This document shows positions 531-33,256 of a DNA stretch of 64,000 bases, in pieces; the stretch's first letter is position 1, and every line of letters begins with the position of its first letter. The stretch covers positions 1,631,992-1,695,991 of the forward strand of contig JAHDYR010000005.1 of the NCBI GenBank assembly GCA_019828565.1. The letters run 5' to 3'. The position numbers and the translations under genes were made by a program. This DNA is from Carpediemonas membranifera BICM. Taxonomy: Eukaryota; Protista; Fornicata. The notes below the pieces were generated by a model. The model made no database searches. It saw nothing but the letters and a program-made list of their open reading frames with translations, and was not told where the DNA came from.

Positions 531-580
531 GTGATAGACTGGCGTTAAAGTGCGGCGTTGAATGCAGCATGGTCTTTACC
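1..580. repeat. Inverted segmental duplication, arm 1 (pairs with 9162-9789)
   Basis: 1-559 matches revcomp 9231-9789 and 560-580 matches revcomp 9162-9182. Arm 2 carries 48 extra bp (9183-9230). Confidence 0.95.
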
Positions 581-2120
581 AATATAACGAGGCATACTTA
601 GAAACGGTCTTCTCCTCCGCGACGATACAAGGCAGTGTCTGGATACACTCTTGGATAGGACGCACAATCGGCACCATGGATGCGCATGTAGTAGGGTGAG
701 CAACACCCACTGCTGGATGGCTTGTGTCGCCTGAGACCACAACCCCGTCTTCCTTCCTTCCCTGGTAAAACAAAGCCCCGATTCCTGGGATACGGAAAAT
801 ATTCTCTATATGACCAGCCTTCACTGGAATCCAGGAGCTGACCACCTCGCCCATCTCGCCCCGGGTCGGCTTGACCCCCAGCTGACCTGTGGGGTTGTAA
901 CCGCGACAGTACCACACCCCTGCCCCGTCAGGACCATCGCCCCGCTGGATAAAGACAGACATGTTCCCCAATATCAGCCGGCTGATTGGCCAGGTCGCTG
1001 TGATAGGCTGGGGGTGGGTCAGGGTCTCGCTGTCGAAAGGGAAGGGGCGGGTGCGGTTGTCGCCAGCACACAGGAGAGTGCCCGCGGTCGACCGGAACAC
1101 AGTGATGTTACGGGAAATAATCACGTCATAAACGGGGAAGGGGAGGCGGGTTGGGCCGTCGATCTTGCTCGCATGACCCACGCCAAGGCGACCGAAGCTA
1201 TTTTCCCCAGCGGCATAGCAGACACCGTCGCCGATAAAGAAGGATGCCAGCGGCCCGCCCTTAATTCGACTCGGGTTGAAGTTTGAGTGGAATTTGATTG
1301 GTGTGAATGAAGTCAAATTTGGAGATGTCGAATCTACTCCCAGACAGCCGTGTCGGTTGTCACCAGCAGCAAGGATGGATCTCTTTCCCTCAGATTCCAC
1401 TGCTAGATACACTCGACCGTCGATCCCAATAATTTTTTGGACACCAGTGACATTAACCTTGACAAATCCCGTCCGAGGGTTAGTATCTCCCACACCGAGC
1501 TGACCCTTGGTGTTATCTCCAGATATAAACCACGCCCGCTGCCACTGACAGAATACTACTGTGAGACCAGGGAAGAAGGAGACTCTACTGACCTCCCCCG
1601 GGATAGGGACCACGTGGGGCGTGTTGAGTATGCATTGGCGGCGGTCTATACCAAGCTGCCCGACTTGGTTCACACCAAACACGGCGATTGAGTTTGTGTG
1701 CCGGGTGGAGAGGAGGGGAGCACCGAAACAGCCCCGGCCCACATATATGGAGGCGATGGCTGGCATTGGGACCCACTGAGGGCTGTCAGTGTGAACCTTT
1801 GTACACTTGTACCCGAGCTGCCCGGAGACGTTGAGGCCATATGTGAAGAGACGGCGCTCGAAAAGCACGTAGCTAGTGCCACGGCTTCTAAGCGGTTCTT
1901 GGCTCTGAAAAGAGATAAACACCTCGGTAAAACGCTGACAAATAAACCAGTTGGCTTTTTTTTGAATTGGACGTGCGTGTAAGAGAATGGCGGCTATGCA
2001 GCTTGAAGGGAGGGTATACAAGGTTGCAGGAAGCTCACTAAACACAATATCGAGATGTAATGAGCGTTCATAGATGGGCTGATAGGTTGATTGTCCCCGG
2101 TGTTTCCTGGAACCTCTCAT
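576..2120 (-). CDS. F-box-like + RCC1-repeat beta-propeller protein (family member E, least degenerate)
   Basis: Several RCC1 repeats (GLNVSGQLG, GVNQVGQLG, GDNTKGQLG, GDNRHGCLG, GENSFGRLG, GYNPTGQLG). N-terminal LYTLPSSCIAAILLHARPIQKKANWFICQRF has F-box spacing. Confidence 0.85.
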   Translation of the reverse strand: MRGSRKHRGQSTYQPIYERSLHLDIVFSELPATLYTLPSSCIAAILLHARPIQKKANWFICQRFTEVFISFQSQEPLRSRGTSYVLFERRLFTYGLNVSGQLGYKCTKVHTDSPQWVPMPAIASIYVGRGCFGAPLLSTRHTNSIAVFGVNQVGQLGIDRRQCILNTPHVVPIPGEVSRVSFFPGLTVVFCQWQRAWFISGDNTKGQLGVGDTNPRTGFVKVNVTGVQKIIGIDGRVYLAVESEGKRSILAAGDNRHGCLGVDSTSPNLTSFTPIKFHSNFNPSRIKGGPLASFFIGDGVCYAAGENSFGRLGVGHASKIDGPTRLPFPVYDVIISRNITVFRSTAGTLLCAGDNRTRPFPFDSETLTHPQPITATWPISRLILGNMSVFIQRGDGPDGAGVWYCRGYNPTGQLGVKPTRGEMGEVVSSWIPVKAGHIENIFRIPGIGALFYQGRKEDGVVVSGDTSHPAVGVAHPTTCASMVPIVRPIQECIQTLPCIVAEEKTVSKYASLYW

Positions 2121-2432
2121 ACTGGCGATTGTTGGTATTAAACTGCCCGTTGCACCAAGCTGGACTACGAGGCCGGCCCACGGCTTGACAGCGCAGGGAA
2201 TTCACTGCATCAGAGTCTCTGAGTCCAATTCCAGGCATTTGCATTCTTCCACTGACAGAGTCAATTTGTACCAAATTGCCGCTTGACCACTGGAGAATGG
2301 GACGGCCGACGGTTCTGGCCATGACACTTGACTTAAACAGGCACGCTGGGAGGATCACAGAGATCCGATCCGATCATCGGATCCGAATTCTGCGGCAGTA
2401 AGGTCGCGTCGACAACCTGTGCGAGAAGAAGA

Positions 2433-4118
2433 ATGCACATGCCTGTTCAAACAACAGATTCTAGTTATCAAGAGGCAAATATGATTGGTGCATACGGTTT
2501 AGCCACCGTTCTTACCGCCAATGTGTCAGGAGACGTCCCAAGCTTGCTCAAGCATGCATTCCAACACCAATTTGTCAAAGAGATGCCAGAGATGCCAGCT
2601 AGTGACCGTAAGACGGCACTGAATGGTGGAAAGACGGTCTCTGTTTTGGTCACCATGCTTGAAGCGATGACCAGCTTTAAACCACGCGCCCAAGCGCTAG
2701 TCGACCGTGCCCGCTCCATCCTAACTGACGGCCCCCCGCTCAGCATGAACGTCGAGCTCGCTTCTGGACAGGAACTTCCAGATCAGCTTCATACGCTTCT
2801 CCAGGGAACAGTGTGGGCGACGCTTCTGGACGCCGGGGCTGACCCGGATCTGACTGACCAATGGCCGGAGGTCAGAGAGCACCATGAGTATGATAAGAAC
2901 GTATTTTACCCAAACACCGAAGAGAGCGCGCGGTACACTGCCGAGAGCAAGTGTCTCTGGTTCCTCTGCAGGAAGTTCTTCTTCTCGCACCAGGTTGCCG
3001 AGAAGAACGGCAAGACTGTAGTATCTCAGGCGAACGGCGAGATCCATGCCCACCGACTTTACCACGGCCGTCTTTTTGAACTCATCATCCGATCGGACGT
3101 CAACATCCCCAAGTACACGCAGCTTCGGGTTCCACCCATCGTCAAGGCCTTCGGGATGGGTAGCTGCACCCTGGTCATGGCCACCGCAGCGGGGCCATAT
3201 GCCCTTGACCGGGACGATAGCCACAACTTCGATGAGACCCACCTCAATGACTTCGCCACGGTTCCCACATTGCTGACGTTCCCCAAGTGTCCAGATGTTG
3301 TCAAGCTCGAGAGCAGCCTCCCTATCTGGCACAAGGACGGCATCGTCCAAGGTGTCTTCAGGGGCGATGAGATCATCATCGTTCTCACTCCAGTCGGGGC
3401 TGTGGCAGCGGGACCTTTGTGTGCGACCCTGATCGGCCCAGACATCACCGACGACCTCATAAGATTCCACCCATTGCCTCTGCCCCGCGAATTCATCCCC
3501 GACTCATGCTTGTTAAGTGGCCCCACCATCGTCTTCAGCTGTGGGTCACAGCAAATGATTGGTGGAATGAACTTCTTCGGCCAGTTGGGTCTGGGGCACC
3601 AGAGAAATGTTGTCGGGCTCGTACCCCTACCCTTCCATGTCGATGCCATCTTCAGTAATCTTCACTTCACCCTCTTCCATGATGGGGAGGATGTCAGGTT
3701 CGCTGGCAGTGTTCCACCGCATCTAGCCCGCATAGGTCTGCTCCCTGACTATACTGCCGGCGACATCTGCCCGCTAGCTACCCTTGCATTCCAAGGACAG
3801 CCGGACCGTTTCTTCTGCACCTTCTCCGCAGCCATGTGCATCTACCCCGAGGAGACTAGGATAACGGTCACAATCCCGCACGAGGCTGACAGTGACACGC
3901 CCCCGACCCTTTGCCGGACGATACCCCACGCTGCTGTCGCACTCAGACATAGCGAAGTCCTTGACGACCGAGCAGTTTATGTCCAGTTGAGTTCTGGAGG
4001 ATGGGTAACAGTATCGATGGATACGCCTGATGAGCCTGTTGTTGAGGTACAGGATCCTGGTGCGGGAGAGGATTATCAGTTCCTGCTTGCCGAATTGGTG
4101 TCGTTTCCAGTGCTATAA
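2433..4118 (+). CDS. Lineage-expanded F-box-like/degenerate RCC1 protein (member A)
   Basis: 561-aa ORF. Shares GDVPSLL, GPPLSMNVEL, HTLLQGTVW, GADPDL, LWFLCRKFFFSHQVAE, LPxWHKD, LTPVG and GMNFFGQLGLGH with members B-D. Confidence 0.85.
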   Translation: MHMPVQTTDSSYQEANMIGAYGLATVLTANVSGDVPSLLKHAFQHQFVKEMPEMPASDRKTALNGGKTVSVLVTMLEAMTSFKPRAQALVDRARSILTDGPPLSMNVELASGQELPDQLHTLLQGTVWATLLDAGADPDLTDQWPEVREHHEYDKNVFYPNTEESARYTAESKCLWFLCRKFFFSHQVAEKNGKTVVSQANGEIHAHRLYHGRLFELIIRSDVNIPKYTQLRVPPIVKAFGMGSCTLVMATAAGPYALDRDDSHNFDETHLNDFATVPTLLTFPKCPDVVKLESSLPIWHKDGIVQGVFRGDEIIIVLTPVGAVAAGPLCATLIGPDITDDLIRFHPLPLPREFIPDSCLLSGPTIVFSCGSQQMIGGMNFFGQLGLGHQRNVVGLVPLPFHVDAIFSNLHFTLFHDGEDVRFAGSVPPHLARIGLLPDYTAGDICPLATLAFQGQPDRFFCTFSAAMCIYPEETRITVTIPHEADSDTPPTLCRTIPHAAVALRHSEVLDDRAVYVQLSSGGWVTVSMDTPDEPVVEVQDPGAGEDYQFLLAELVSFPVL

Positions 4119-4185
4119 ATCGCAGTTTTCGGCAGAGTCGTGTGACGGTGCTAACACAAACTTTACCAAACAATGAACGAAAGAA

Positions 4186-6033: not shown

Positions 6034-6210
6034 TTTCTTACAGATGGGATGCTCGCAGAATTTCCACCGTAGTGTGAAAACCGAGAACATGTGATATCCA
6101 CGTCCTAGGGGCTCCTCAAGCCTCCTATGGTGGTAGTTTTCGCCGCTTGTCATGGATTTGGGTTCTGCCAGATTTGCGCAATAGAACAGCCGACGACCCG
6201 TCTTCGAGCC

Positions 6211-9027: not shown

Positions 9028-9161
9028 GAGGTGTGCTGTTCCTTGATGGGCCGCAGTTTGCCGAATTGTATCATAAACTAATTGCTGAGAACACCCGTCT
9101 CGCTTGGCAGTGATCGCGGCTGATGGAAATGTCTCGGTACTGCGCTGCGGATTCTTCGATC

Positions 9162-9789
9162 GGTAAAGACCATGCTGCATTCAACGGCCTTGTAGTGGTG
9201 TCAGCCTCCTGTCGCTCGATGAGTAATTCAAACGCCGCACTTTAACGCCAGTCTATCACATGCCTTCTGGGGCGAAGAAGCTGGAAAGCAAGGTGCACAA
9301 TGGACTAAGCGAAATGGATGGCGTCATCTGTGAGCTGCTTGACTTCCACAGCCACACGCCTGACGAGACGCTCAAGAATCTCACCTCACTCCGCAGTTTC
9401 TTCACACAGAAGAGCGTGATCGAGCTCGAGGCAGACCAGGCGAACACAATCATCGATATCACGCTCCCATTCATGCTCACGGACCCCGAATCGCCCGAAT
9501 TCATCAACGACCGCGCCTATGCGACACCGAATCACATCTTCGAGGCCTCGTGGATCATCACAAACGTCGCCTCGGGGAACCAGACGCCCGTTGTGATCGA
9601 GCGCGGCCTCGTGCCCCTCCTCTGCAGCCAGATTGCGTCCGCGCGGTCGATGGAGGACACCATAATGGCTGAGAAGCTTTTCTCGCAGGCCGTGTGGACG
9701 CTGGGGAACATCGCAGGTGAGCGTTCGACCGATAGCATCGTCGTCGACATCGCCCGCACCGGCGTCGTGGCGGAATTCGCCGCCTGGCT
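9162..9789. repeat. Inverted segmental duplication, arm 2 (pairs with 1-580)
   Basis: See arm 1. The true extent beyond 9789 cannot be seen because arm 1 leaves the window. Confidence 0.95.
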
Positions 9790-10720
9790 TCCCAAGCTGA
9801 ACCGCAGGAACAAGGCCATTGTCATGTGGGCTCTCGAGTCCATGATGTCCAGTTCACGGCAGCTCTGCAAAGCTGGGTTGCTGAGCAACTTCGACGAGGC
9901 CAGCAGCCTCGCGATGGACATGGTCATCGAATGCGTCGACGCCGACTGGACCATCAAGCAAGGCGGGCTCATCGACGACACGATGCGCTTCCTGTTCAGG
10001 GTTTCCGACCACGACAACGAGCTCCCCCGCGACAAGCAGCGGCCGTTCGTGCGGGCGTGCATCGCGCTCTTCTTCGACCATCCCTTCCTGCAGACGTCGA
10101 TCATGAGCGCGTTCGGGAACATCTCGAACAACAGCACCGAAGGTTCCAGCATCCTGGTCGAAATGGGCTGCGTGGCATTGCTCGGCGCGGCCATATCGAC
10201 CAGCGATGCCGTGAGCACCCGCAAGACCGCCGCGTGGACGCTCAGCAACGTCGTTGTCGACGTTCCGGAGGTGGCGTTCGAGTCGGACATCATTGACGTG
10301 CTGGCGCAGTGCATGGCGACCGAGAAGTCGCCGCATGTCGGGAAGGAGCTCGTCTACGTTGCGGCCAACCTGATGGACGCCAACGACAACCCGTCCGTCT
10401 TCATCAACTCCGGTGTCATCGATGGCATGATCAATCAGATGATGAACGCTGTCAGCGTCGGGACGAAGCAGCATAGGCTCGTGGAGGAGATGCTCGACGT
10501 TGCTGCGCAGAGCTTGCAGCTCGTTCTGGCATCCAACCGGGAGGGCGACCTCCCCATAGGAGTACTGATCGAGCTCGTTGACGAGGCTACTTGCTTGGGG
10601 TTGGACGTGCATCGTCTGCTTGAATTCATGGACGTCCTGCAGGGCATAGGCGTCATTGATGCGTGGGACCCGGATGATGGCGATGAGACGGGGGATGTAA
10701 CCGAGGACAGCGAGGCGTGA
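9260..10720 (+). CDS. Divergent importin-alpha-like ARM-repeat protein lacking an IBB domain, copy 2
   Basis: Importin-alpha W..N motifs FEASWIITNVASG, QAVWTLGNIAGE, RKTAAWTLSNV. No Arg-rich IBB/KRR segment at the N-terminus. Confidence 0.85.
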   Translation: MPSGAKKLESKVHNGLSEMDGVICELLDFHSHTPDETLKNLTSLRSFFTQKSVIELEADQANTIIDITLPFMLTDPESPEFINDRAYATPNHIFEASWIITNVASGNQTPVVIERGLVPLLCSQIASARSMEDTIMAEKLFSQAVWTLGNIAGERSTDSIVVDIARTGVVAEFAAWLPKLNRRNKAIVMWALESMMSSSRQLCKAGLLSNFDEASSLAMDMVIECVDADWTIKQGGLIDDTMRFLFRVSDHDNELPRDKQRPFVRACIALFFDHPFLQTSIMSAFGNISNNSTEGSSILVEMGCVALLGAAISTSDAVSTRKTAAWTLSNVVVDVPEVAFESDIIDVLAQCMATEKSPHVGKELVYVAANLMDANDNPSVFINSGVIDGMINQMMNAVSVGTKQHRLVEEMLDVAAQSLQLVLASNREGDLPIGVLIELVDEATCLGLDVHRLLEFMDVLQGIGVIDAWDPDDGDETGDVTEDSEA

Positions 10721-15198: not shown

Positions 15199-16740
15199 TT
15201 ATGGCCCGGGGTTGACCAAAACAGGGAAGATCTCAATGATGTCGAGTGTTGGGGGCTCGTCTCCGGGATGGACCTCAGCCACGCCGCCCGACACGCGATA
15301 TGTCGTGAACCACAAGCCCTGCTTATCTCTGAAACTGTTGTTCCCCAGACTCAGAGCAGTTGCTTCGAACTGCATTACGTAGTTAACATCCAAGTATGTG
15401 TTCACGTAATTCGTCCTACCTTCAGTGACCCAGACAACATAGTCGTACCCACAAGACCATCCAATGACGCTCCCAGCAAACGACAGTGGTGTAATACCGG
15501 GGGTATTGCCCTGACTGTGCAGGCCCGCACGGAAGATGGCATGAGGGATGTCGCCAGCAAGAACGAGGCGGTGGTCGCTGAGGAATATCGTAAATGTGTT
15601 AGTGAATGCCGTCTTGCCTAGGACCCGGTCAACATGGAAGGGGAGGGGGGTGAATGATGGCACGGGCTCTCTGTGGCCGAGTCCCAGCTGACCGTGGTCG
15701 TTGGGGCCCCATATCATCTGTTGATCACCCATGGAGATAATCACTACTGAAAACTGGTTCATGATGTGATCTGGGACAAACCCTTCAGGCAGAGTCACCT
15801 CTCGTAAACAGCAACCACCGCTGGCGAGCTGGCTGAAGAAGGTGGTCGTGGAGTTGCCAGCCATCACAAGCCCAACTCTAGTGAGGATGAATATGCTTGT
15901 ATCGTCCAGAGAGACGTGGGTCACCAGCTCAGCCCTGTTCCATGGGGGTAGTCCCGTTTCATAGGCGGCAGTTTTAGGACAGGACGAAAAGGAGAGCGGG
16001 GTAGGGTAAATGCACCCGCGATCCACCTCGGCGGCAGGACACCAGCCCCACAGGCCCCTTGTTGTTTGGGCGATGATGCCATGGCCACAAGATGAGAGGG
16101 CGACAAGACGAGGGAGACGGACCCTGGCGAGGGGGTGGGCCGGCGTGGTTGTTGCGGTAAGGAGCCGGCCAGCATACGCCATGTAGATGGGTGTGGCAGG
16201 GATGAAGTTGCTCTCACCATCCTTTGCGGCAATGTTGTGGCAGAAGAAGAACTTGCGGCAAATGAACCAGAGGATCTTAGCATCTGGTCTAAAGCGCTCC
16301 TGGAACTCGGTTGGAAGCTTATCATCGAGGTCTGGGTTGGCTCCTGTCTGCATGATAATACTCCAGAGAGTGCCCTGGAGCAGCGTGTGCAGGGCGACCG
16401 GGAGCTCCTGCCCATCAGCGAGCTCGACGTTCATACTTAGAGGGGGGCCGTCTGTGAGAATGGAGCGGGCGCGGTCGAGGAGGGTCTGGGCTCCTGGTTT
16501 GAGCATGGGGACCTTGGCGAGCAAATCGACAAGGGATTCGAGGGAAGTATCACTCGCTATTCTTGATGCACCTTCCTGCTCCTGGATCAAGGGCATAGTA
16601 TGCTTGAAGTGCCGCGAGTAGGCGTGGCGAAGAAGAGAGGGAACGTCTCCGGCGGTGGAGGCCGTAAGCAATACTGCAGCGCGGTAAGCGGATATAATAG
16701 AGTATCTTATCCCGATTTCCTCGCTTTTAGATCCATGCAT
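15199..16740 (-). CDS. Lineage-expanded F-box-like/degenerate RCC1 protein (member B)
   Basis: GDVPSLLRHAY, DRARSILTDGPPLSMNVEL, HTLLQGTLW, LWFICRKFFF, GPNDHGQLGLGH, PLPFHVD shared with A, C and D. Confidence 0.85.
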   Translation of the reverse strand: MHGSKSEEIGIRYSIISAYRAAVLLTASTAGDVPSLLRHAYSRHFKHTMPLIQEQEGASRIASDTSLESLVDLLAKVPMLKPGAQTLLDRARSILTDGPPLSMNVELADGQELPVALHTLLQGTLWSIIMQTGANPDLDDKLPTEFQERFRPDAKILWFICRKFFFCHNIAAKDGESNFIPATPIYMAYAGRLLTATTTPAHPLARVRLPRLVALSSCGHGIIAQTTRGLWGWCPAAEVDRGCIYPTPLSFSSCPKTAAYETGLPPWNRAELVTHVSLDDTSIFILTRVGLVMAGNSTTTFFSQLASGGCCLREVTLPEGFVPDHIMNQFSVVIISMGDQQMIWGPNDHGQLGLGHREPVPSFTPLPFHVDRVLGKTAFTNTFTIFLSDHRLVLAGDIPHAIFRAGLHSQGNTPGITPLSFAGSVIGWSCGYDYVVWVTEGRTNYVNTYLDVNYVMQFEATALSLGNNSFRDKQGLWFTTYRVSGGVAEVHPGDEPPTLDIIEIFPVLVNPGP

Positions 16741-17160: not shown

Positions 17161-17751
17161 ATGCAGTCCGGTATTCTATCCAACGACCGCGTCTTCGTTC
17201 GAGGATCCTTGACCGTCAGATGCGACATCAGCACTGACATCATTCCGAAAGGACTTGTTTTCTCAGTTAGATGCCCCGCTCAAGCAAGAATCCCTCACAA
17301 GTGCGACAAAGTTGTGAGTTACTACACACTTGAAACGATGGCCGATGGCAACGCTCTCATCTTCACTTTCCCTGACAAGTTCTACTTCAACGGCTTCAAC
17401 GTCATCAACGAGCGCCGTGTGTTCGACGACCAGCCTGCCGACCTCAACCACGCCCTCAAGGCCGCCCTCGTTCACGACGTCCTCATCACCTATCAGCAAA
17501 TGTTCGGGAACATCAAGTGGGGCATCGGGGTTGGTAACACACTCAACAACCTCAACCTGCGACAGCTGGCCGACTTCCTCTTCGAGCAGCTGCTGAAGAA
17601 GGATGATTTCTGTCTTGTCAACCGGTATAACCTGGAGATCGCCATGATCGTTGGAGCTGTCAAGTTCAACACAACAAGGCTCAGGGTTAAGGCCAGCGCG
17701 CCATTCTTTGGGGGGAAACGGCGCACGCCCAGGAAGCTGCCCCTATGGTAA
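17161..17751 (+). CDS. DUF1353-like protein
   Basis: Motif order FPDKFYFNG ... AALVHDVL ... RQLADFLFEQLL matches the DUF1353 pattern (xPxGFxxDGAS ... AAxVHDxL ... RxxADxxFxxxM). Confidence 0.6.
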   Translation: MQSGILSNDRVFVRGSLTVRCDISTDIIPKGLVFSVRCPAQARIPHKCDKVVSYYTLETMADGNALIFTFPDKFYFNGFNVINERRVFDDQPADLNHALKAALVHDVLITYQQMFGNIKWGIGVGNTLNNLNLRQLADFLFEQLLKKDDFCLVNRYNLEIAMIVGAVKFNTTRLRVKASAPFFGGKRRTPRKLPLW

Positions 17752-19247: not shown

Positions 19248-22200
19248 ATGCGTCCCTCTACCACGAGTTTGGCAACCTATGCGTTCGTCTTTATCCTTTA
19301 CTTGTGCACATTCAGTGTATGCCTGGACACGGACCTGAATCCGATGTTTTACGCCAAAGCCCTCGCCGAAACCGAGACGATGTTCATTTCCTGCCAGCAG
19401 GACATCATTGGCATCAGCGGCAATGTCAATCAGATCGTGTGCTACCTGTTTGGCACCCTCCTTCCCAGCAATGCTCCCGTTGCCACTGTCTCTGACGTCC
19501 AAAGCTGCTTTGGTACCGCCAAGTCAATTACCAACATCGATGCCGGCACTGGCGTCTCAGGCAACCACGTGTTCATCTACATCGCGACCTTTGACGTCCC
19601 CGCGCCGGTCTACACGCCCAACTACAACCGCTACTCCTGTAAGCTCGCTGTCACTACATCAAACAAGGGTGTTGTCTACGATGAGAACATAGACATCCTC
19701 CTGTCCATAACTCACGGCACGGTGACCTTCGAGGAGGAGGCCAGCGTCGTCTTCGTGGCCGGTGACAACTCTGCGGGCCAGCTCAGCGCTGATCCAGCCA
19801 CCAAGGCGGACATACCTTCGGATCTGTGGACTAACGCACCATTCGACTACGAGGCCCTCACTGCTGTCGAGATCGGCGACTCTGCCTTCGTCATCACGGA
19901 CATCGGCGAGCTATGGTCCCTAGGCGGCACCAAGTATCCCGGGCACGCCATACAGGGCTCTGATGTGTGGAGGAGAGTGCAGCACGAGGATGCACTCAAC
20001 ATGGTGTTCACCCACGTCTCACTGGGCGCTGATCACGCGCTTTTCTTGGGCTACGACCCCATCACTGGCTACGACCATCTGTACGTAGCCGGTAGTGGCC
20101 CTGCTCTTGGTCTTGGCGGCATCGAGTACGTAGTCTTCGAGGAGGTTACCGAATTCAAGGACAAGGACATCAAAGACATCCAGGCCACTCAGACAGCCTC
20201 GTACCTCCTCTTGGGCGATGGAAGCGTCTGGGCATGCGGTAGAAACGACCACGGTGAGCTGGCGACTGGGACGACAGACCCGAGCGGCACGTTCATGTTG
20301 GTGGAGATGTTCCCCGCTGACTTTGGCACCGTCAGCAAGCTCGGAAACACCCTTGGTGCATTCATGTTTGCAATCGACACCGCGGGCAAAGTTACTGCCT
20401 GGGGAGAGAACCGTAAGGGACAACTCGGTCTCGGGGTGACAGACGCCTTCATCACCAAGCCGACTGTCGTCACATCCCTCTCTCCAAAGTTTATCGCCCA
20501 GGTCGAGGGCGGGCTTGACTTCGCCCTAGCACTGTCATCTGATGACTTCCAGGTCTACGGCGCGGGTGACACCGCCTACACCGGCACGGACCCCGCTATT
20601 GTCACGGGCAGGACCACCAACGTCTTCGCCAAGTCTACCCTCGTCCCCACCCCCACCGCTGAGATCGCGGCCGGTGAAATGCATGGGGTGGCACTGACCG
20701 TCAACGCCAACACCGGGGCGACTGGCGTCTATTCGTGGGGAGACAACTCGTACGGCCAGCTGGGACTCGGGCATGACCAGAAGAGTACCCCCACCCCCAC
20801 AGAGGTACCGACGCTATCATCTACCACGACAGAGCCCTTCAGCCGCGTGTGGGCTGGTCACCGTCACACCATCGCCATGGAGTCGACGAACATGCAAGAC
20901 CAGGCATTCTATGAGATCTACCCAGACGGTAGAGTCATGGTACACTCACTCAGCGGATCTGTTGGGCATGCTGTCCTGGGCGATATCATTGAGTACAACG
21001 CTGGGTCCACCATCAACACTCACATCAGCGCTACAACCGTCAACAGCGACACTGGAGTCTATTGGATATGGTCAGACGGCCATTACCCCGTAACTGACCA
21101 GATCCTGCAGTTCACACTCCGTAACGGGGCAAGGGAAGAGTCATTCAAGTTCCACATTCCGAAGGAGGTCGTGATTCAGCCCAAGGTCGACGGCATGACG
21201 TGGAAGTACACTGGGGACAGCTGGATGACAACTCTCCACTTGGCACACGGAATAATCAACAGCAGAGCGTCTCAGGTGAAGCTTAGCTGCGTCGATGGTT
21301 TGGTGTCGCCCACATTTACCCTCATGAAGCTCGATAACGCCGCCACCACATGGGATGTGTCGATAAGGCCCCGACACAGCATGTCGGGCGCTACCACTGT
21401 GCTCTACCCCTACTATGACCAGTGTGAACTCACCATAGACGGTGTTTCCATGTTCAACGGGGCGCTGGGCACCATACTGCCTCCCGACCTCACGCTGTCC
21501 ACCTTTGAAATCAAGGACGTCACTCCGTACATGTACTATGGCGGCCACATGACCGTATGCATCACACCTAAGGACATGTACGGTCGTTTCCTGCCCCTAG
21601 GCGTCGCTACGATGGCTGCTAAGGCTAAGGTCTTCGCAGTTTACCCCGTTACAGTGTCCAGCGAGCAGACGGAGCAGCTTGAGGCCATCGTTGGAGGTCA
21701 GCAGCAGGGATTCTACTTCGACCAGGCCAACAAACGCTACTGCGAGGTCGTCGACACTACCTTCCCCGTATCTGGCCAGATTCAGGCCAAATTTGATGGG
21801 GAGATCGTGGGCGATGAAATATTCATGCAGATACGGGCGGATACCGGCAAATCTAAGGTCTTCGTCAAGGAGGGGACCATGTGGCCTCCCATGGCCGGTG
21901 AGGCCGCCAGGTTCTGTATCAGCGTGTTTGACATCTCAGGCGTGAGGAAGATCACGTCAGCGCCCCCACTGTCGGTCGAGCTCATCATCAGAGGCGACGC
22001 CGACCAGACTTACCACCCCTCGCTCGACCCCTCATCAAATGATTACTGTGTCAGCGTGGTCCTCCCTGCTGGCCACTACTCTTACATCGCCACGTACAAC
22101 GGACTCCAGCAGTTCTCTGGCGCCGAGTTTACTGTCGCAGCGGCCCCCAAGACTGGCAGAAGCGGCCCCATGACCAGGGTATTCGACTTCATGCTCACCG

Positions 22201-22418
22201 TATTCGCTGTCCTGCTGTCACCGGTTGTCGCAGGCGTTGGCGTGGTCGGTGGTGTTGTCATTGCTGCTGCCGGCATCGTATTTGGGGTTGTGATGGTCCG
22301 CAACAGCGGGCGGGGAGAGAAGAAGGTGAAAGGGAGGGGTCAGTATGAAGCTATTGGCACCGTGGCCGATGACGGGTTTGGGTCAGCCCCAGCGCCCTTC
22401 GTTTATGATGCTATTTGA
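19248..22418 (+). CDS. Type I membrane protein with extracellular RCC1 propeller and beta-sandwich (Ig/filamin-like) stalk
   Basis: Signal peptide (YAFVFILYLCTFSVC), RCC1 repeats (GDNSAGQL, GRNDHGEL, WGENRKGQLGLG, WGDNSYGQLGLG, AAGEMHGVAL), C-terminal TM segment and short basic tail. Confidence 0.85.
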   Translation: MRPSTTSLATYAFVFILYLCTFSVCLDTDLNPMFYAKALAETETMFISCQQDIIGISGNVNQIVCYLFGTLLPSNAPVATVSDVQSCFGTAKSITNIDAGTGVSGNHVFIYIATFDVPAPVYTPNYNRYSCKLAVTTSNKGVVYDENIDILLSITHGTVTFEEEASVVFVAGDNSAGQLSADPATKADIPSDLWTNAPFDYEALTAVEIGDSAFVITDIGELWSLGGTKYPGHAIQGSDVWRRVQHEDALNMVFTHVSLGADHALFLGYDPITGYDHLYVAGSGPALGLGGIEYVVFEEVTEFKDKDIKDIQATQTASYLLLGDGSVWACGRNDHGELATGTTDPSGTFMLVEMFPADFGTVSKLGNTLGAFMFAIDTAGKVTAWGENRKGQLGLGVTDAFITKPTVVTSLSPKFIAQVEGGLDFALALSSDDFQVYGAGDTAYTGTDPAIVTGRTTNVFAKSTLVPTPTAEIAAGEMHGVALTVNANTGATGVYSWGDNSYGQLGLGHDQKSTPTPTEVPTLSSTTTEPFSRVWAGHRHTIAMESTNMQDQAFYEIYPDGRVMVHSLSGSVGHAVLGDIIEYNAGSTINTHISATTVNSDTGVYWIWSDGHYPVTDQILQFTLRNGAREESFKFHIPKEVVIQPKVDGMTWKYTGDSWMTTLHLAHGIINSRASQVKLSCVDGLVSPTFTLMKLDNAATTWDVSIRPRHSMSGATTVLYPYYDQCELTIDGVSMFNGALGTILPPDLTLSTFEIKDVTPYMYYGGHMTVCITPKDMYGRFLPLGVATMAAKAKVFAVYPVTVSSEQTEQLEAIVGGQQQGFYFDQANKRYCEVVDTTFPVSGQIQAKFDGEIVGDEIFMQIRADTGKSKVFVKEGTMWPPMAGEAARFCISVFDISGVRKITSAPPLSVELIIRGDADQTYHPSLDPSSNDYCVSVVLPAGHYSYIATYNGLQQFSGAEFTVAAAPKTGRSGPMTRVFDFMLTVFAVLLSPVVAGVGVVGGVVIAAAGIVFGVVMVRNSGRGEKKVKGRGQYEAIGTVADDGFGSAPAPFVYDAI

Positions 22419-22514
22419 GACATAAAGATGAATTAAAAGGCCAGCACGTCAAGTGAAACTTTTAATTATTTGACATGTCGGTCGGCCTGCACATAAAAAA
22501 TGTAAATGCAAAAA

Positions 22515-25454: not shown

Positions 25455-25923
25455 CAAGGGTATTTCTCCACAGTGGTGTTCTGAAGGCAAATCATCCGGC
25501 AGCAGTGGAATCATCAAAATGGAAAGTGAGTGGATCAGAGTGGCAGCGCAGTATGCAAGAGGCGGGTGAGCCTACCCGGCTTCACCGATGCCAGGAATGT
25601 CCGTTACTATGGATGTCCGCACTTCTCCGAGAACAAGGGCCCGGGCGATGGGTTGACGCGATTGGACGGATGATAGAGGATGACTATATGCGACAATCGG
25701 ATCATAGACCGGTGCGGTTTTGGAAGCAGAGACAGTGGGACAGCCAGGAGTTCAGGCTGGCGACAGAGTCTGTTCTGCTCAGAATTGCCGGGCGGTTCTG
25801 CTGAGCCAGCGAAGGCAACTGACTGAGCCCCCCAGTCAAGTTGGGCACTCTTCGCGGGCGAGTGATTGTCTCGCGGTATCCTTGTCGACTCAAGCTGGAG
25901 TCGAATTTTCACGAATATATGCT

Positions 25924-27525
25924 ATGAAGACCATGAGTGTACAGCATCGTGGAACACACCCTTACCATGCTAATGATACTATCGAGAACACATTGCTTGC
26001 TGCCTACTACTTGTCCTTTTCAGTAACTGCAAATTTGCCCGGAAATGTGCCATCGATACTTGCTGCTGCCTTCAGAAGACAGCTGAGGATTACTGTTCCC
26101 GTTGGAGACGACACTGAAGCCTATACATATGAATCACAGTCGCAGGGTGCTGCCTTCATCATTCTCCTCAAAGTCTTGAAACACATCCTTCGCCGGCCCG
26201 CCCTGACGCCCGACGCCCGCCGCCTGGTGATGCACGCCAGGATGACTCTCATCAGAGGGCCTGAGCTGAGTATGAACATCCATCTCAATGAGGGCGATTA
26301 TCTCCCCGATCGGGTTTACACGCTGCTCCAGGGAACTGTGTGGTCGATACTGATGCAAGCCGGGGCGGACCCGGACCTCGGGGACACTGAGAGAAAGATC
26401 TACACCAACGACGACAAGTGTCTCTGGTTCCTCTGCAAGAAGTTCTTCTTCTCGCACCAGGTTGCCGAGCACGATGGCGAGGTGCTCTCGTACTTCAATG
26501 TGTGTCCGTTCTTCCATAGGTCATACGCTGGCCGTCTATTCACACGAGACTTCATCCGACGGGGGTCGAGTCTATACTCTCTCGTCAGGTCACCACCCGT
26601 AATCGCCCACACAACGAGCGATGGCTGGGCAAACGTACTGGTCACACCACACGGGGTCTACGGCCAAGGTAACAACCGGCATGCAAGGTTCGGCGGCATT
26701 CCCTGCGAGACCATGCCGCTACGCCGGCTGAAATTCCCTGCTTGCCCCAGGATCCAGCAATTTGAAAGGAGACTGCCTCCCTGGCACAAGGACAAGCTAG
26801 TCAGACAGGTCGTGATGGAGGAGACATGCACCCTCGTCCTCACACCTGTCGGGTTGGCCGTGGCCGGGGCTGATTGTGCATGGGCTACCGGAGATGATGT
26901 CGTTGATAAGGCGGTCTTCCATCCAGTCCCGCTGCCCAATAATTTTGTACCAGATCGCATCATATCTAGCTTGAACACCGTTGTTCTGACACTGGGCGAT
27001 CGGCAGTTTATATCTGGTACCAACTGCACCGGCCAGCTTGGTCTTGGTCACCGCGAACCCATGAGCGGCTTCGTCCAGTGCCCATTCCACGTCGAGAGTA
27101 TTGTCAGTACACCCCAGTTCTCCATATTTATAACCTCTGCGATGTTTTTATTCGCGGGGCGGGTCCCAGACGTCCTCGCCAGCCCCACTGCGGGTGGTTT
27201 ACTCCCAGGTTACGCTGCGTCAGCCCTCTGCACAACAGCCACCCCACTCCTCTTCAACAGACCGGTGAAGAGGATTTACATTAACTTATTCCGCCTTTAC
27301 TATGTTATTCAGGGCGAGACAGTCTGCCTCGACTTCCACTGCCAGTACGGCAAGTTCACTGTGCCATTCGAGGCCGTTGCAGTTGCCCGCACGACCATCT
27401 TCAAGGACACCTTTGGCATCTGGCACAAGGTTGTCAGGGTAACTCACGGAGTCGCCTCGTTTGTCCGACTCGAACCGGGTCATTTCCCAGAGAAAAGGCA
27501 TGTTATGCAGCTCGAGCCTGTTTAA
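25924..27525 (+). CDS. Lineage-expanded F-box-like/degenerate RCC1 protein (member C)
   Basis: GNVPSIL, GPELSMNI, YTLLQGTVWSILMQAGADPDL, KCLWFLCKKFFFSHQVAE, LPPWHKD, GTNCTGQLGLGH. First ATG at 25924. Confidence 0.85.
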   Translation: MKTMSVQHRGTHPYHANDTIENTLLAAYYLSFSVTANLPGNVPSILAAAFRRQLRITVPVGDDTEAYTYESQSQGAAFIILLKVLKHILRRPALTPDARRLVMHARMTLIRGPELSMNIHLNEGDYLPDRVYTLLQGTVWSILMQAGADPDLGDTERKIYTNDDKCLWFLCKKFFFSHQVAEHDGEVLSYFNVCPFFHRSYAGRLFTRDFIRRGSSLYSLVRSPPVIAHTTSDGWANVLVTPHGVYGQGNNRHARFGGIPCETMPLRRLKFPACPRIQQFERRLPPWHKDKLVRQVVMEETCTLVLTPVGLAVAGADCAWATGDDVVDKAVFHPVPLPNNFVPDRIISSLNTVVLTLGDRQFISGTNCTGQLGLGHREPMSGFVQCPFHVESIVSTPQFSIFITSAMFLFAGRVPDVLASPTAGGLLPGYAASALCTTATPLLFNRPVKRIYINLFRLYYVIQGETVCLDFHCQYGKFTVPFEAVAVARTTIFKDTFGIWHKVVRVTHGVASFVRLEPGHFPEKRHVMQLEPV

Positions 27526-27872
27526 GTAAGAATGCACATTTGCTTGATCCGTCAAGCCGCTCTGTCGAATACGGGGCCTCTGATCTTTCGTAAATTTTTG
27601 ATAATTTTTGGCCAATCATTCCCCAAGAATGACAACACCGCATGTACCTATCAATACGAACCATCACACCTCTTCATACAGGCATAGTTAGAGAATGTCC
27701 CCATCGGCTCCATGATGATCGATGCGATTGATCTCAATACCATCGAACTCTCCACGCACAATCACGAACCAGGTTGCAGAACAATGCTTCGTGGCGCCCC
27801 TACGGGCCTGGCCTGAGTGCTCTGTGCACTGACCCAGGCGACTCTGGGCATCTGATTTTTTCTTGCAACGCA

Positions 27873-30800
27873 ATGGACGACCTCCTCGATTTCGACATAC
27901 AACGGTTTGAGCAGCTTTCTGCTGAGCTGTACAGTCATCCCAGCGAAGATGCGCGAAATAACGCGCAGCAGCAACTCGATCCCCTCTTTGTATCCAGCAC
28001 TCGCAACCTCTCTGCATATATGCGTCTCCTGGACAACGTCACAACTATATATGGCCAATATTGCATTCTACAGCTTATTGAGAAGTGCGTTGGGCAGAAC
28101 TGGAGCGCGCTTAACAGTGACACTCAGCGTGACCTCCATGCCAAGCTCCTCAACATGGTCGGCTTCCAGTCGGATCGGTTCACAGCCACCAACCAGTTCA
28201 CCGCACTCCTCCGCCTCTACGCCCGCGTGCTCAAGTACGGCTGGGTAGACTCCAAGGACTTCAGGGCCTCGCTGTCAGCCATCGTTGACTCGTGCCTCGT
28301 GCCTGACATTGATAACCAGCGCGTCCTCGGCATCAAGACCCTTGTGGAGGTCACCAAGGAGATGTCCACACGCTCTCCTGGCCGCACGATCACCCAGAAC
28401 CGCAAGGCGACCATGATGTTCAGGGACAAGACCCTCCTATCGTTCATGGAGCTCAGCGTCTCCCAGCTCCGCCGCCTCTACGGCCCCGACGCCTCCAGCT
28501 CACCTCTCCACGACCAGATCAAGACTGAATACCTCAACCTGGCCTGTGCCTGCCTCGACTTCGACTTCACGTGCACCTCATACGTTCTTGACCCAACGTC
28601 AGACCAGTTCTCCCTCCAAATACCATCCACGTGGCGCTCCCTCGTCCAGACTGACTGGCTACTCACACTGTTCTTCGACATCTACCGCACCGAGTCGCCC
28701 CCCAGATCCACACTGGCTATCGAGTGCATCTCACAGCTATCTGCCGTCAAGACATCCCTGCTTCCCACTGATGCCGATAAGCTGACTTATCTCAATCAGT
28801 TAATTACAGGCGCTCTTCGGGCGATGCAGAACAACCTGCCCCTCCGTGACGAGGCCGAGTACCACATGTTCTGCCAGCTCATATTCAGACTCAAGCCGCC
28901 ATTCTTTACATTCCGTCATGTAACTCGCTGTGTGAACTTTAACGACTACATCGAAGCCCTCACTCAGTTCACCGTCGCCTCGCTGGCCGAGTACTCCTCC
29001 TGCAAGAACGGCATACACTACTTGATGAAGACATGGTCCAGACTCAGCAAGAACGCCGAGGGCTCCTTTGGCGGTGAGACCTACAACGGCGGGCAGATCC
29101 CCCTGGCTGCGGCACAGATCACCCAGAAGTTTATCGGGGTCTACCTCTCTGAGATCAGGGAGGCTTACACCGATGGGAGCTACCAACAAGACGACCCTCT
29201 CGACGACAGTCAGTTGGAAGCCATGCTCGACTCGATCTCGACTCTAGCCAGGTCCTGCTACCCCCAGGCGGCTGAGCTACTCGGGGCTGATCTTGTATCC
29301 CTCACAAACGTGATCAACCGAGGTGAGGCGACCCTTCTGGTCGAGGCTGAGGCTGCTTGGATTCTCCGTGTCGTTGCCGCCGTCGTCGAGGGTAGGCTGA
29401 CCCCAGGCAACGAGAGCCACGACGCCGAGCTGGCAGGCAAGGCAATGGCGATGCTGAGGGCTGTCGACCGCAGCAATGAGCAGGCTCAGAGTGGCACCGT
29501 TGCCCACATCAACCTGGAGTTCGCCGCACTTCTGTTCCTGGATGCCTTTAAGACGGCCTTCATCTCGGACAACGAACTGGCCATGCGTATCTACCCCGCT
29601 GTACAGAGGGATGCCGGCATCAGCAACACTCCCGAGATGCTGGCCTACACCCTCGACAAGTTGTTCTGGATTATACGGGTGTACCCGAACGTCGGCAGAC
29701 TCGTCGACAGAGCTTTCCACTTCGCTAACAAGCTCACGGGCAACTACTACACCGGCAAGACTCTGCCCGGCCTTCCCATCGTCAGAGACATCCTCGAGAG
29801 ATACGCCGCGGACTTCCAACTCTTCTTCCAGCCAGACCTCCTCAAGAAACGGACCAAGCTCTACCACATCCTTGGTGTACTCCTCTTTACTCAGGAGGAC
29901 AGTGGTGTTGTCGATCGGTTCGTACGTCCCATGCTGTTGTCCGTGTCTGAGGCTGTGAAGGCCGTGCAGCAGTCCACCGACCAATCCGCCCAGCTCTCCG
30001 TCATCAGGGCGTGCAGAGACGTCTCGGGGCTGCTCAAAGCCATCCAGAAGTACGCGAACTTCACTGCCATTTACGACATACTTCTCCCACAAACTGTCTC
30101 GGGCCCCGCACCCACCCCATTCTTCGCCATGCTCGAGACTATCGCCCGGGAGAGCCCCACTGAGGCCGAGCTCGCCATCCCCATTCTGAGAGTGGTCACA
30201 GATTTTATCACTGGGTTCCAAAAGAGCTATGACGTTTCTTTTGATAGATTCTCGACTGCAGGATATAGGATCTTCGGCTCAGCTTCCAAGACTATGTTGG
30301 TGATCGCCCAAGCTTTCCTTCAGCTGATCCCAACCATCCGGGAAAGGATCACGACGGAGTCTGATCTGTGGCCCAGGTGCTATAAGGTGGTCTACCACCT
30401 TCTACAGGCCGTCAACAAGGCAGTCCAGACCTCCTTCTGCAACTTTGGCGTGTTCCAACTCTTTGGTGACAACACAGTCGAGGCGTATCTCGACACTCTG
30501 CTCGAGATTGTCGCGTCCATCCCGCCCGACGATATCCTTTCCCACGTGAAGCTGAGTCGCACGGTCTTCTCATTCATCCAGACCATCGCCCGCTCCCACA
30601 TCGTCGCCCTCGCCCGCATGGAAGGCAACACGCTGGCCCGTCTGGTGCAGCTGCTCGTCTCGGCAATGGTCGATAACCCCGCCACCGTAAGTGCGGCGTC
30701 GGTCAGCTCCCCGGCAGCTGAATCGATCGAGAACCTGGTAACGTATATTGTCGAGGGCACCCAGTCGACGACGCCGTTCAGGAACGAGCTCGCACGAGTA

Positions 30801-31118
30801 CTTCAAGACAAGCTCAACAGCGACCGGGAGACGCTGACCGGTGTGCTTCACTCCATGTTTGACATCGTCCTGTACAGGGAGAGCCCCATGCTCTACAGTC
30901 TGTCCAAGGCGATGCTGCCCGTCATGGTGCTCATCTCAGACGAGCTCCCGGCTGTGCGGCAGACGCTGTTGGACAGATGTGACAATGAGGTCGACCAGGC
31001 AGAGGTGGCCCGGTGCTATGATAAGCTGCTCGTTGGTGTATCAGGTATTGATGACGTCGACGCCTTCCAGACCAACCTGCAGCTGTTCTCGTCGAGTGTC
31101 AACGGGCTTGTAAGGTGA
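27873..31118 (+). CDS. XPO7: Exportin-7 / RanBP16-17 family karyopherin
   Basis: FEQLSAELY start, RKATMMFRDKTL, ACLDFDF, LQIPSTWR, YHMFCQLIFRLK, CNFGVFQLFGD, YSLSKAML motifs. Confidence 0.85.
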   Translation: MDDLLDFDIQRFEQLSAELYSHPSEDARNNAQQQLDPLFVSSTRNLSAYMRLLDNVTTIYGQYCILQLIEKCVGQNWSALNSDTQRDLHAKLLNMVGFQSDRFTATNQFTALLRLYARVLKYGWVDSKDFRASLSAIVDSCLVPDIDNQRVLGIKTLVEVTKEMSTRSPGRTITQNRKATMMFRDKTLLSFMELSVSQLRRLYGPDASSSPLHDQIKTEYLNLACACLDFDFTCTSYVLDPTSDQFSLQIPSTWRSLVQTDWLLTLFFDIYRTESPPRSTLAIECISQLSAVKTSLLPTDADKLTYLNQLITGALRAMQNNLPLRDEAEYHMFCQLIFRLKPPFFTFRHVTRCVNFNDYIEALTQFTVASLAEYSSCKNGIHYLMKTWSRLSKNAEGSFGGETYNGGQIPLAAAQITQKFIGVYLSEIREAYTDGSYQQDDPLDDSQLEAMLDSISTLARSCYPQAAELLGADLVSLTNVINRGEATLLVEAEAAWILRVVAAVVEGRLTPGNESHDAELAGKAMAMLRAVDRSNEQAQSGTVAHINLEFAALLFLDAFKTAFISDNELAMRIYPAVQRDAGISNTPEMLAYTLDKLFWIIRVYPNVGRLVDRAFHFANKLTGNYYTGKTLPGLPIVRDILERYAADFQLFFQPDLLKKRTKLYHILGVLLFTQEDSGVVDRFVRPMLLSVSEAVKAVQQSTDQSAQLSVIRACRDVSGLLKAIQKYANFTAIYDILLPQTVSGPAPTPFFAMLETIARESPTEAELAIPILRVVTDFITGFQKSYDVSFDRFSTAGYRIFGSASKTMLVIAQAFLQLIPTIRERITTESDLWPRCYKVVYHLLQAVNKAVQTSFCNFGVFQLFGDNTVEAYLDTLLEIVASIPPDDILSHVKLSRTVFSFIQTIARSHIVALARMEGNTLARLVQLLVSAMVDNPATVSAASVSSPAAESIENLVTYIVEGTQSTTPFRNELARVLQDKLNSDRETLTGVLHSMFDIVLYRESPMLYSLSKAMLPVMVLISDELPAVRQTLLDRCDNEVDQAEVARCYDKLLVGVSGIDDVDAFQTNLQLFSSSVNGLVR

Positions 31119-31327
31119 GATACTTGATTTATGTTTAAAACTGGTGGTGACTTGGGGGAAGTCGATGGCCCCGAGGGAAGCAGGCTGGCCCTATATTCGT
31201 GTTCAGTGCTGTGAGTGCCCCGCGTTTACCACCTCGAAGCCCGACACAAGCCCGACAGGGCGGCATTGTCTATTTGTGTCAAATTACGATTGATGACATC
31301 CACACTTATCGCGTCAGCGGTAGTGAA

Positions 31328-33256
31328 ATGAACGCCAATGCGTATAGTGAAGAGGATTGCCGGGAGCTGGACATCACACTGTCCTGTGTGAAGCACGATA
31401 TCATGTTCCTGACGAAGTGTGATCCCAGACGAGATGAACTGATGGGGAACCTTGCTTCTTTCGTGAAAGAAAAGGTAACGCCGCTATATAATGAGTTATT
31501 CGGCGATATAACAACGTCAGATGCAAGAAAGGTGTTCATTGAGGCTCATAACATCGCCACCACGTCCAGCAACACCATCGCCAACGATGTTCCAGCCCTC
31601 ATCCGACGGGCATTCAGAGCAGAGTTCGGCGAGGAAATACCATCCGCCAGCGTCCCAGCCCTGCAAGATGCCCTCCGCAAGCTCGGATCGTGTCGGCTCC
31701 ACAACAAGCAGGCTATCCGCCTGCTTCACAGTGCCAATCTTGTCTTCTCCCGCGGCCCGGAACTGAGCATGAATATTGAACTTGGCGAAGGCGAGGACCT
31801 TCCAGTGAAGATGCACACGCTGCTCCAGGGCACAATCTGGGCCATACTGATGCAAGCCGGAGCCGACCCGGACATTGACACCCGCCCCGACAAGAGAATG
31901 CGGGACCCAAGTGGACACAGGTATAAGTTTGGCTATACTGAGAGAGAGCGCTGCCTCTGGTTCCTCTGCAAGAAGTTCTTTTTCTCGCACCAGGTTGCCG
32001 AGAAGGATTGCGATCAAAGCCTTAAGATTGACACCAGCCATTTCGCCCATCGACTATACTTCGGCCGGTTCTTCAAGCTGTCAGCTGACACTCGCCCGGC
32101 TGCCCGGAGATACACATGGATGCGACTCCCCCCAGTCATCCGACTCTATCGTCTGAAGTATCTGACGTTCATTGCTGTCACCCCGCGTGGCTTGTATGGC
32201 TACCTGCCCCACTGGCGGTGGCGCACCCCCGACTTTATGTTCGATGAGTTGCACCCCGACCGAATGATGAAAGCCCCTGCCCACATTGCTTTCACACGCT
32301 GCCCGGCCATCAGTGAGTATGAGGCCAGTCTGCCCGTGTGGCACAAGGACAGGGTGGCGACGGATATTCGCTTCCTCAAGGGCGAGCAAAGCATGTTCTG
32401 TGTGATCCTGACGCCAGTCGGTGTGGCAGTCAGCGGCGAGCAGACTGCCAACCTATCCAGAGCCCCCGGCGAGCGGAGGGATAGCGTCATCACCCGCGTG
32501 TTCCGACAGGTCCGGATGCCCGGACGATTCATACCCGATCAGGTCACCAACGTCGGGTCGACCATTCTGTTTGGACATGGCAGTCGGCAGATGATTGGCG
32601 GTGACAACTCCTTTGGCAAGCTCGGCATCGGTGATGAGGCGGCATGGGACGGTCTTGGGGTCTTCCCCTTGCCGTTCAGGGTCGACCGAGTCTTCGACTT
32701 CGGCGACATCATCAACGTGAAGTTCCATCTTTACCTCAGTGGCCGGCAGATACTGTTCGCTGGCGAGGTCCCACCCCACTTGATTGACTCTGGGTTGCTC
32801 ACTGGGTTCGAGGCGAAAGAGCTATGCCGCACAGCCACGCCGCTTCGATTCCCTAAGCGACTCATCGGTTTCTACTGCACCCAGCGGGCCGTAGTCTGTG
32901 TCTATATCAATCAGACAGTATGCCACGTGATACACCGCACGCGACATCGCAACCGATTCCTGACTGGTCTCTTGGATGAGCTGGATGAGCCTGAAGAGGA
33001 GAACCCACCCGCACCCCGCACTGACGTGCTCACGGTTGAGTTTGAGAGCTCCGCAGTGAGTGAGGTCGGGGTGTACTATGACTCTGTCTTCTCACTGCAG
33101 ATGAAGGGGACTGATCGGGGTGGGTGGCGGACACTCTCGATCAACGGCGAGGGGGAGACGGTTATCAGGCATGAGAGGGACATACGGTGGGGGGTGAAGG
33201 ATCTAGCCGAGGTGGAGGTGGATGCATATGGAGTTGAAGAGGAGTCGACATCATAA
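31328..33256 (+). CDS. Lineage-expanded F-box-like/degenerate RCC1 protein (member D, extra N-terminal helical segment)
   Basis: NDVPALIRRAF, GPELSMNIEL, HTLLQGTIWAILMQAGADPDI, CLWFLCKKFFFSHQVAE, LPVWHKD, GDNSFGKLGIG. First ATG at 31328. Confidence 0.85.
   Translation: MNANAYSEEDCRELDITLSCVKHDIMFLTKCDPRRDELMGNLASFVKEKVTPLYNELFGDITTSDARKVFIEAHNIATTSSNTIANDVPALIRRAFRAEFGEEIPSASVPALQDALRKLGSCRLHNKQAIRLLHSANLVFSRGPELSMNIELGEGEDLPVKMHTLLQGTIWAILMQAGADPDIDTRPDKRMRDPSGHRYKFGYTERERCLWFLCKKFFFSHQVAEKDCDQSLKIDTSHFAHRLYFGRFFKLSADTRPAARRYTWMRLPPVIRLYRLKYLTFIAVTPRGLYGYLPHWRWRTPDFMFDELHPDRMMKAPAHIAFTRCPAISEYEASLPVWHKDRVATDIRFLKGEQSMFCVILTPVGVAVSGEQTANLSRAPGERRDSVITRVFRQVRMPGRFIPDQVTNVGSTILFGHGSRQMIGGDNSFGKLGIGDEAAWDGLGVFPLPFRVDRVFDFGDIINVKFHLYLSGRQILFAGEVPPHLIDSGLLTGFEAKELCRTATPLRFPKRLIGFYCTQRAVVCVYINQTVCHVIHRTRHRNRFLTGLLDELDEPEEENPPAPRTDVLTVEFESSAVSEVGVYYDSVFSLQMKGTDRGGWRTLSINGEGETVIRHERDIRWGVKDLAEVEVDAYGVEEESTS

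Follow-up and report, generated by a model that had tools for sequence, protein, structure and literature searches.

A large gene family with a putative divergent F-box and an RCC1-type propeller in Carpediemonas membranifera

Proteins that combine an F-box with RCC1 repeats include Pof9 of Schizosaccharomyces pombe and human FBXO24. Saf1 of Saccharomyces cerevisiae has an N-terminal F-box followed by RCC1 repeats (bioRxiv 10.1101/636902). Expanded F-box families of Caenorhabditis elegans have been linked to antimicrobial defence (PMC8120010). In this work, we describe a gene family of the free-living anaerobic protist Carpediemonas membranifera in which a conserved helical block, a putative F-box, precedes an RCC1-type propeller. 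Five members (A to E) lie in the window, which is the whole stretch of 64,000 nucleotides that was analysed (C6:1631992-1695991). The published genome consists of 69 contigs that total 24.2 Mb and encodes 8,300 proteins (PMC8516963). Both F-box and RCC1 proteins and F-box expansions have precedents. The literature searched contains no Pfam-invisible family of this type with hundreds of copies in a fornicate protist, and no paper there links Carpediemonas with RCC1 or describes Carpediemonas F-boxes.

The five open reading frames proposed by a sequence-only reading of the window are all present and stop-free. They are member E (576-2120, minus strand, 514 residues), member A (2433-4118, plus strand, 561 residues), member B (15199-16740, minus strand, 513 residues), member C (25924-27525, plus strand, 533 residues), and member D (31328-33256, plus strand, 642 residues). 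Members C and D begin at the first ATG within longer stop-to-stop frames. All five exhibit the same order: an N-terminal part comes first, the conserved helical block follows, and a short linker then leads to the RCC1-type repeats. Members A to D are mutually 32-39% identical over 450-570 residues (E 1e-65 to 1e-97). E is far more distant: BLAST links it to these four through the RCC1 repeats only, and it scores 56 bits on the block profile, which was partly built from E.

Member E has a short N-terminus and a compact block at 1908-2033 (minus strand, residues 30-71) with three predicted helices. The block carries an upstream LP, then L37-P38, I45-L46, and I60-C61-Q-R-F64. The motif and F-box-consensus spacing that had been quoted for E hold, with 24 residues from L37 to C61, and the same Leu-to-Cys spacing is found in Skp2. 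The block directly precedes the RCC1 repeats as had been described, and seven repeats were found, at residues 94, 148, 200, 252, 304, 352, and 406. The Leu-to-Cys spacing is 37-57 residues in A to D. The longest form is that of A, where the block at 2775-2999 (plus strand) has 57 residues from the first leucine to the cysteine, about 33 of them inserted. The block of B is at 16228-16404 with 17 residues inserted, that of C at 26302-26466 with 13, and that of D at 31799-31999 with 25.

The fold of the block was predicted with AlphaFold2 without templates from residues 22-89 of E and an alignment of 114 family sequences, in which the A to D types take part as aligned sequences only. The model shows a short turn and three helices with a predicted local distance difference test (pLDDT) score of 82.8. 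A structure search of the Protein Data Bank (PDB) with this model returned 37 matches at Z>=2 among 48,161 representatives, and 12 of the 37 are F-box proteins, all matched over their F-box region. The top match is FBXO42 (Z 3.4, root-mean-square deviation (rmsd) 3.4, 52 residues aligned), followed by cyclin F (Z 3.3, rmsd 2.7, 45 aligned). The Skp2 F-box was superposed with rmsd 2.8 over 40 of 41 residues, and the other F-box matches are Cdc4, FBXL17, FBH1, beta-TrCP twice, COI1, 5ibk, FBXO31, and FBXO3. Even if 200 F-box chains are assumed in the library, this enrichment has P<1e-19. In Foldseek, FBXO3 took rank 1 (E 2.2) and D3 rank 4; a separate comparison gave D3 a Z of 3.1. The structure search of the ESM Atlas placed F-box clusters at ranks 1 and 2 with template modelling (TM) scores of 0.49 and 0.47. 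The block of the compact member E probably adopts a three-helix F-box-like fold as modelled, because the three structure searches agree and not because of any single match. In the inserted form, represented by A, helices 1 and 3 are predicted in the expected places at pLDDT under 50 from an alignment of five sequences.

Several results weigh against the identification as an F-box. The individual structural matches are weak and none is significant singly (Z up to 3.4). Unrelated helical folds score equally, such as Vps16 (Z 3.0) and FliG (2.9), and the share of 12 in 37 is uncalibrated against models of unrelated three-helix peptides. With the Atlas's own models, of residues 20-80 of E and 10-175 of B, no F-box was matched. 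The Pfam F-box models PF00646 and PF12937 returned nothing with E<=10 when 18 and then 44 fragments of the block were searched, and they have no match in whole proteins. Three profile searches of the PDB and a search of the block profile against 1.84 billion proteins found no F-box homology for the block, and the block profile matches the genome's canonical F-box with a probability of 0.5%. That canonical F-box (G000:C32:83861-83980, L061) is the only one that Pfam detects in the genome; it lies outside the family and is itself under the curated cut-off, which places the lineage at the limit of what the Pfam models detect. A long helical-looking region follows it.

Column frequencies were taken from 114 block sequences. 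The first leucine is present in 96%, and hydrophobic residues occupy positions 9-10 in 89-100%. Helix 3 opens with a hydrophobic residue (L/M/I), then C in 96%, K/R in 93%, K in 93%, and F in 76%. The pattern L-P-x-x-hydrophobic is retained in several compact members (L033, L037, L049, L051, and L060). These columns bear on a rival explanation, in which the block is no F-box but a three-helix cap or an oligomerisation unit specific to this family of RCC1 receptors and resembles an F-box by convergence. Amphipathic helices yield similar hydrophobic spacing, every sequence-profile test is negative, the Z scores are only 2-3.4, and a feature search of the Atlas was blank. However, F-boxes came first in three different structure searches, and the spacing from Leu to Cys is like that of Skp2. 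The start of helix 3 also reads C-[KR]-[KR]-aromatic, the block lies directly before the propeller, and the basal members carry the canonical L-P. We consider convergence improbable and regard F-box ancestry of the block as likely. The earlier claim that the block is an F-box is partly supported, by the predicted fold of E and the motif pattern, and it is not supported by Pfam or profile homology or at Pro2 and Glu4.

Pro2 is found in 5% of the 114 sequences and the acidic Glu4 in almost none, and A to D lack both. In A to D, as in most members, 13-33 additional residues take the place of helix 2; these points also weigh against SCF receptors. Position 4 is mostly Gly or Ser, Pro2 is retained in E and some compact members, and the upstream LP is nearly fixed in the family (91% and 95%). 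In known F-boxes, Pro2 and acidic residue 4 touch Cul1, and Cul1 binding is poor in Skp2 and Fbxo4 when the proline is mutated (PMC3237615). beta-TrCP has neither Pro2 nor acidic residue 4 and carries an LP one turn upstream, yet it is bound to Cul1 via Skp1 (PMC3237615). A second rival explanation is that the block does descend from an F-box but is mostly without a working SCF (Skp1, Cul1, and F-box protein) complex. It would either bind Skp1 without Cul1, in non-SCF complexes or as a decoy, or, in the large inserted clade, now contact the bundle of its own protein. The large clade lacks Pro2 and Glu4, mutation of the proline costs Skp2 and Fbxo4 their Cul1 binding (PMC3237615), and residues are inserted in the box of this clade. 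The B region has no F-box match, and the top conservation lies before the box, a hint that the contact there is with something else than Skp1. However, beta-TrCP binds Cul1 without these residues, cullins are present in the genome, and the hydrophobic positions of helices 1 and 3 are fixed in all clades. We rate this second explanation as rather unlikely, and divergent SCF substrate receptors remain the reading that we favour, by a modest degree of belief.

The family is large. A DNA pattern for the last helix of the block (W-F-hydrophobic-C-basic-K-F) occurs 247 times in the genome and its reversed control 0 times, a difference that chance does not explain. A pattern for the start of helix 1 occurs 227 times, with 3 occurrences of the control. 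Because the last-helix pattern recovers 73% of known members, the corrected number is about 340 loci. Counting by hand how far both pattern lists coincide on contigs C1-C11 (78, 74, and 58 shared) gives about 315 loci, a value that is biased low. The first-look candidates numbered 482 with the block profile and 517 with the whole member B. The family comprises at least 247 loci, fragments and broken copies included, or about 300-500 after correction, which is 3-6% of the 8,300 genes. The loci form 140 clusters at 50% identity, with dense arrays on C3, C13, and C67. The names given to these proteins by NCBI are hypothetical or RCC1, so automated annotation hides the box. Both the size of the family and its concealment had been anticipated by the sequence-only reading.

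The taxonomic distribution of the family is narrow, in agreement with the proposal that it is lineage-specific. All 109 of the 109 non-self protein-database matches of member B are C. membranifera proteins. Apart from a single spurious repeat protein (P0156), which was rejected as a relative, the search of 1.84 billion proteins with the block profile returned family members alone. Among 30 block-profile matches that were looked up, 15 belong to C. membranifera and the other 15 lie on short contigs. Two of these short-contig relatives were traced to assembly GCA_002919055.1, a GC-rich and gene-dense eukaryote that is probably C. frisia, so that about 15 relatives are assigned to this second genome. 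In the FastTree tree, which has long branches and a midpoint root, the relatives from this second genome group with E in the compact-box clade (support 96). Only C. membranifera rows were found in the clade of A to D (support 99). From this placement, the compact form is older and the form with bundle and insertion is a large recent expansion. Judged by these sequences, the family is older than the separation of C. membranifera and the second genome.

Two family proteins have unusual architectures. P0133 (G000:C16, about 296300-299600) has 1,412 residues and three block matches with RCC1-type repeats after each. L043 (G000:C32:71165-75391) is a 950-residue frame where a signal peptide and an RNase T2-like part are joined to a compact member, by fusion or run-through.

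Conservation was compared by region as the mean pairwise identity of 110 C. membranifera relatives. It is highest in the 22 residues that precede the box (76%), followed by helix 3 (71%) and helix 1 (67%), and it is lower in the inserted loop (49%), the N-terminal bundle (45%), and the propeller (43%). The proposed constant box and variable propeller are therefore found (67% and 71% vs 43%), but, contrary to what had also been proposed, the box is not the most conserved segment, since the preceding 22 residues are more conserved. The constant part starts upstream of the box, and variation is found in the N-terminal bundle as well as in the propeller. The ratio of nonsynonymous (dN) to synonymous (dS) substitution is 0.29 in the box and 0.52 in the propeller in pooled pairwise comparisons of 25 close paralogues, where gene conversion is a confounder. 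For dN alone, these paralogues give 0.043 (box) and 0.232 (propeller), and dS is three times lower in the box than in the propeller. No region has dN/dS above 1 in this pooled comparison, which used no site model.

A and C share 17 codons in helix 3, and all 17 have the same third base, in proteins that are 39% identical overall. The DNA block for the last box helix of C (26401-26481, plus strand) is 85% identical to 2934-3014 of A and is a likely conversion tract. The low dS of the box and the identical third bases indicate that gene conversion helps to keep the box constant, and the conservation of the box is partly homogenisation of DNA. Six full-length copies of P0147 with 100% identity are found on six contigs (G000:C3:5852, C39:5639, C54:81039, C67:176468, C68:706748, and C27:187267), together with nine partial or decayed matches, several near contig ends. 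These six dispersed copies point to carriage by a mobile element. A second identical set of the family includes C6:1065268 and C50:108066.

These observations bear on a third rival explanation, that the copy number comes mainly from mobile elements and tandem amplification and that most copies have no selected receptor role. The identical and decayed copies of P0147, the other identical sets and fragments, and the homogenisation to which the low box dS points are what this explanation expects. It is at odds with the diversity of the 140 clusters, with most full-length matches being without internal stop, with the dN/dS of both domains, and with a family older than the split from the second genome. 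In the window, moreover, each member sits singly with ordinary genes on either side, as the claim of dispersal among other genes had stated, and no flanking repeat is common to the members. Amplification as the main cause is very improbable in our judgement.

The propeller of E (579-1871, minus strand) matches Pfam WD40_RLD at E=1e-26. Its repeats are spaced about 52 residues apart with the motif GxNxxGxLG, and among PDB sequences it matches RPGR (E 1e-10), UVR8, and HERC. The propeller of A to D is degenerate, with Pfam significance reached by one repeat only, in B. The RCC1-type propeller supplies a C-terminal putative substrate-binding domain, as judged from these repeats. The N-terminal helical bundle of A lies at 2460-2729 (plus strand, residues 10-99) and is common to A to D and most family members. 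It has about 90 residues in four to five helices with pLDDT about 60-80 in an AlphaFold2 run of A from five sequences, whose overall pLDDT of 45 restricted its use to this bundle. The bundle of A matched no named family and no dimerisation domain, and its only matches are generic bundles of the ferritin/Dps type with Z up to 7.5. Its G-D-I-P motif is found in about 120 of 201 block-bearing proteins. The domain ahead of the F-box of FBXW7 dimerises (PMC12475580). The bundle most likely dimerises the receptors by analogy, because FBXW7 has its dimerising domain in the equivalent place.

A membrane or secreted receptor was considered and rejected, as A to E have no clear transmembrane stretch (best 19-residue hydropathy 1.3-2.0, compared with 2.7 for the RCC1 gene at 19248). 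That gene (19248-22418, plus strand) encodes a separate RCC1 protein of 1,056 residues. Its N-terminus is hydrophobic and residues 999-1017 form a transmembrane stretch near the C-terminus, and it is therefore probably a surface propeller. The gene was rejected as a family member as the block profile has no match there.

Skp1 is encoded by two near-identical genes (G000:C26:615291 and C13:109459; L064 and L065). Their matches to solved Skp1 chains reach E 1e-10 and are strongest over the C-terminal part that binds the F-box. Both are very divergent from the Skp1 of other eukaryotes, and a word search found one relative, in the second genome, with 73% identity. Five cullin matches were found, two of them nearly full length. 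The presence of Skp1 and cullins in a genome with a single Pfam-detected F-box counts in favour of SCF receptors. Two points here also speak against SCF receptors: the cullins are identified at cullin level and not as Cul1, and Skp1 is unexpanded compared with the 20 Skp1 genes of C. elegans.

Expression was sampled from three runs of 2017 that are presumed to be RNA and are not on record as RNA. A single contig of 1,476 nucleotides from one presumed RNA run spans 625-2100 of E without a joint, and there is no coverage in the gap after E. Sequence specific to C is found in contigs of all three runs and sequence specific to D in contigs of two. For A, only a 194-nucleotide contig of low depth was found. 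The contigs of E, C, and D fit transcription.

Taken as divergent SCF substrate receptors, the family would work as follows. The three-helix block would dock onto the C-terminal helices of C. membranifera Skp1, which would connect the receptor to a scaffold of the cullin-RING type, and a target would be held by the RCC1-type propeller and presented for ubiquitylation. The bundle of the large C. membranifera clade would dimerise the receptors, like the domain before the F-box in Cdc4/FBXW7 and beta-TrCP. Tandem arrays, dispersal, and gene conversion would keep the Skp1-binding block near-constant while the propeller loops diverge, and hundreds of specificities could be served by one shared Skp1. 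The two conditions that could be checked from the sequence agree with this, as a three-helix F-box-like model was obtained for E and the copies number in the hundreds. A role of these receptors in defence against foreign proteins is possible by analogy with nematodes (PMC8120010), though doubtful. It is unlikely, though conceivable, that they form a ubiquitin-based defence where propeller loops reshuffled by conversion would target transposon, viral, or engulfed-bacterial proteins for the proteasome, with one receptor captured and spread by a mobile element, possibly as a counter-measure.

Other features were observed in the window. Positions 1-559 and 9231-9789 form an inverted repeat with 100% identity over at least 559 nucleotides, as the window edge cuts it. 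This repeat brackets E, A, and two other genes, and overlaps the start of an importin-alpha-like gene (9260-10720). A gene of 195 residues (48873-49460, minus strand) reads by eye, from its translation, like a candidate bacterial maltose O-acetyltransferase. An open reading frame of 196 residues (17161-17751, plus strand) has no Pfam match at E<0.01.

Giardia, a parasitic relative of C. membranifera, has no detectable Skp1 or Cul1 (PMC7029713). By Pfam, C. membranifera has one F-box gene; if the receptor reading is true, it has several hundred, 3-6% of the gene set. To our knowledge, this would be the first large expansion of F-box and RCC1 receptors, and it would mean that profile annotation can wholly overlook the F-box repertoires of divergent protists.

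The family is similar to the Saf1-type proteins in having an N-terminal, here putative, F-box ahead of RCC1 repeats. It is different in that the Saf1-type proteins are single genes with a recognised F-box, whereas here there are hundreds of genes, with a Pfam-invisible box, an extra bundle, and a loop. A profile of full-length compact members returned ordinary RCC1 proteins and no F-box and RCC1 protein from another lineage, so orthology with the Saf1-type proteins is unproven, and the fusion may have arisen here independently of them. Like RPGR, UVR8, and HERC, E has a propeller of recognisable RCC1 sequence; unlike the family, those proteins have no F-box-like block, and the propeller of A to D is degenerate. 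The family resembles the FBXW proteins (beta-TrCP and Cdc4/FBXW7) in its helical N-terminal domain, F-box, linker, and propeller, and both are structural matches of the block. It is also like beta-TrCP in the upstream LP and in that Pro2 and acidic residue 4 are mostly gone. Unlike the FBXW proteins, it has RCC1 blades in place of WD40, and its bundle of about 90 residues has no dimerisation-domain match. The nematode (FBA/FTH) and plant F-box families share many paralogues, a constant box, a variable substrate domain, and clustering with the family described here. The present family differs from them in having another substrate domain, an unexpanded Skp1, regional dN/dS below 1, and its occurrence in a single-celled anaerobe with 8,300 genes.

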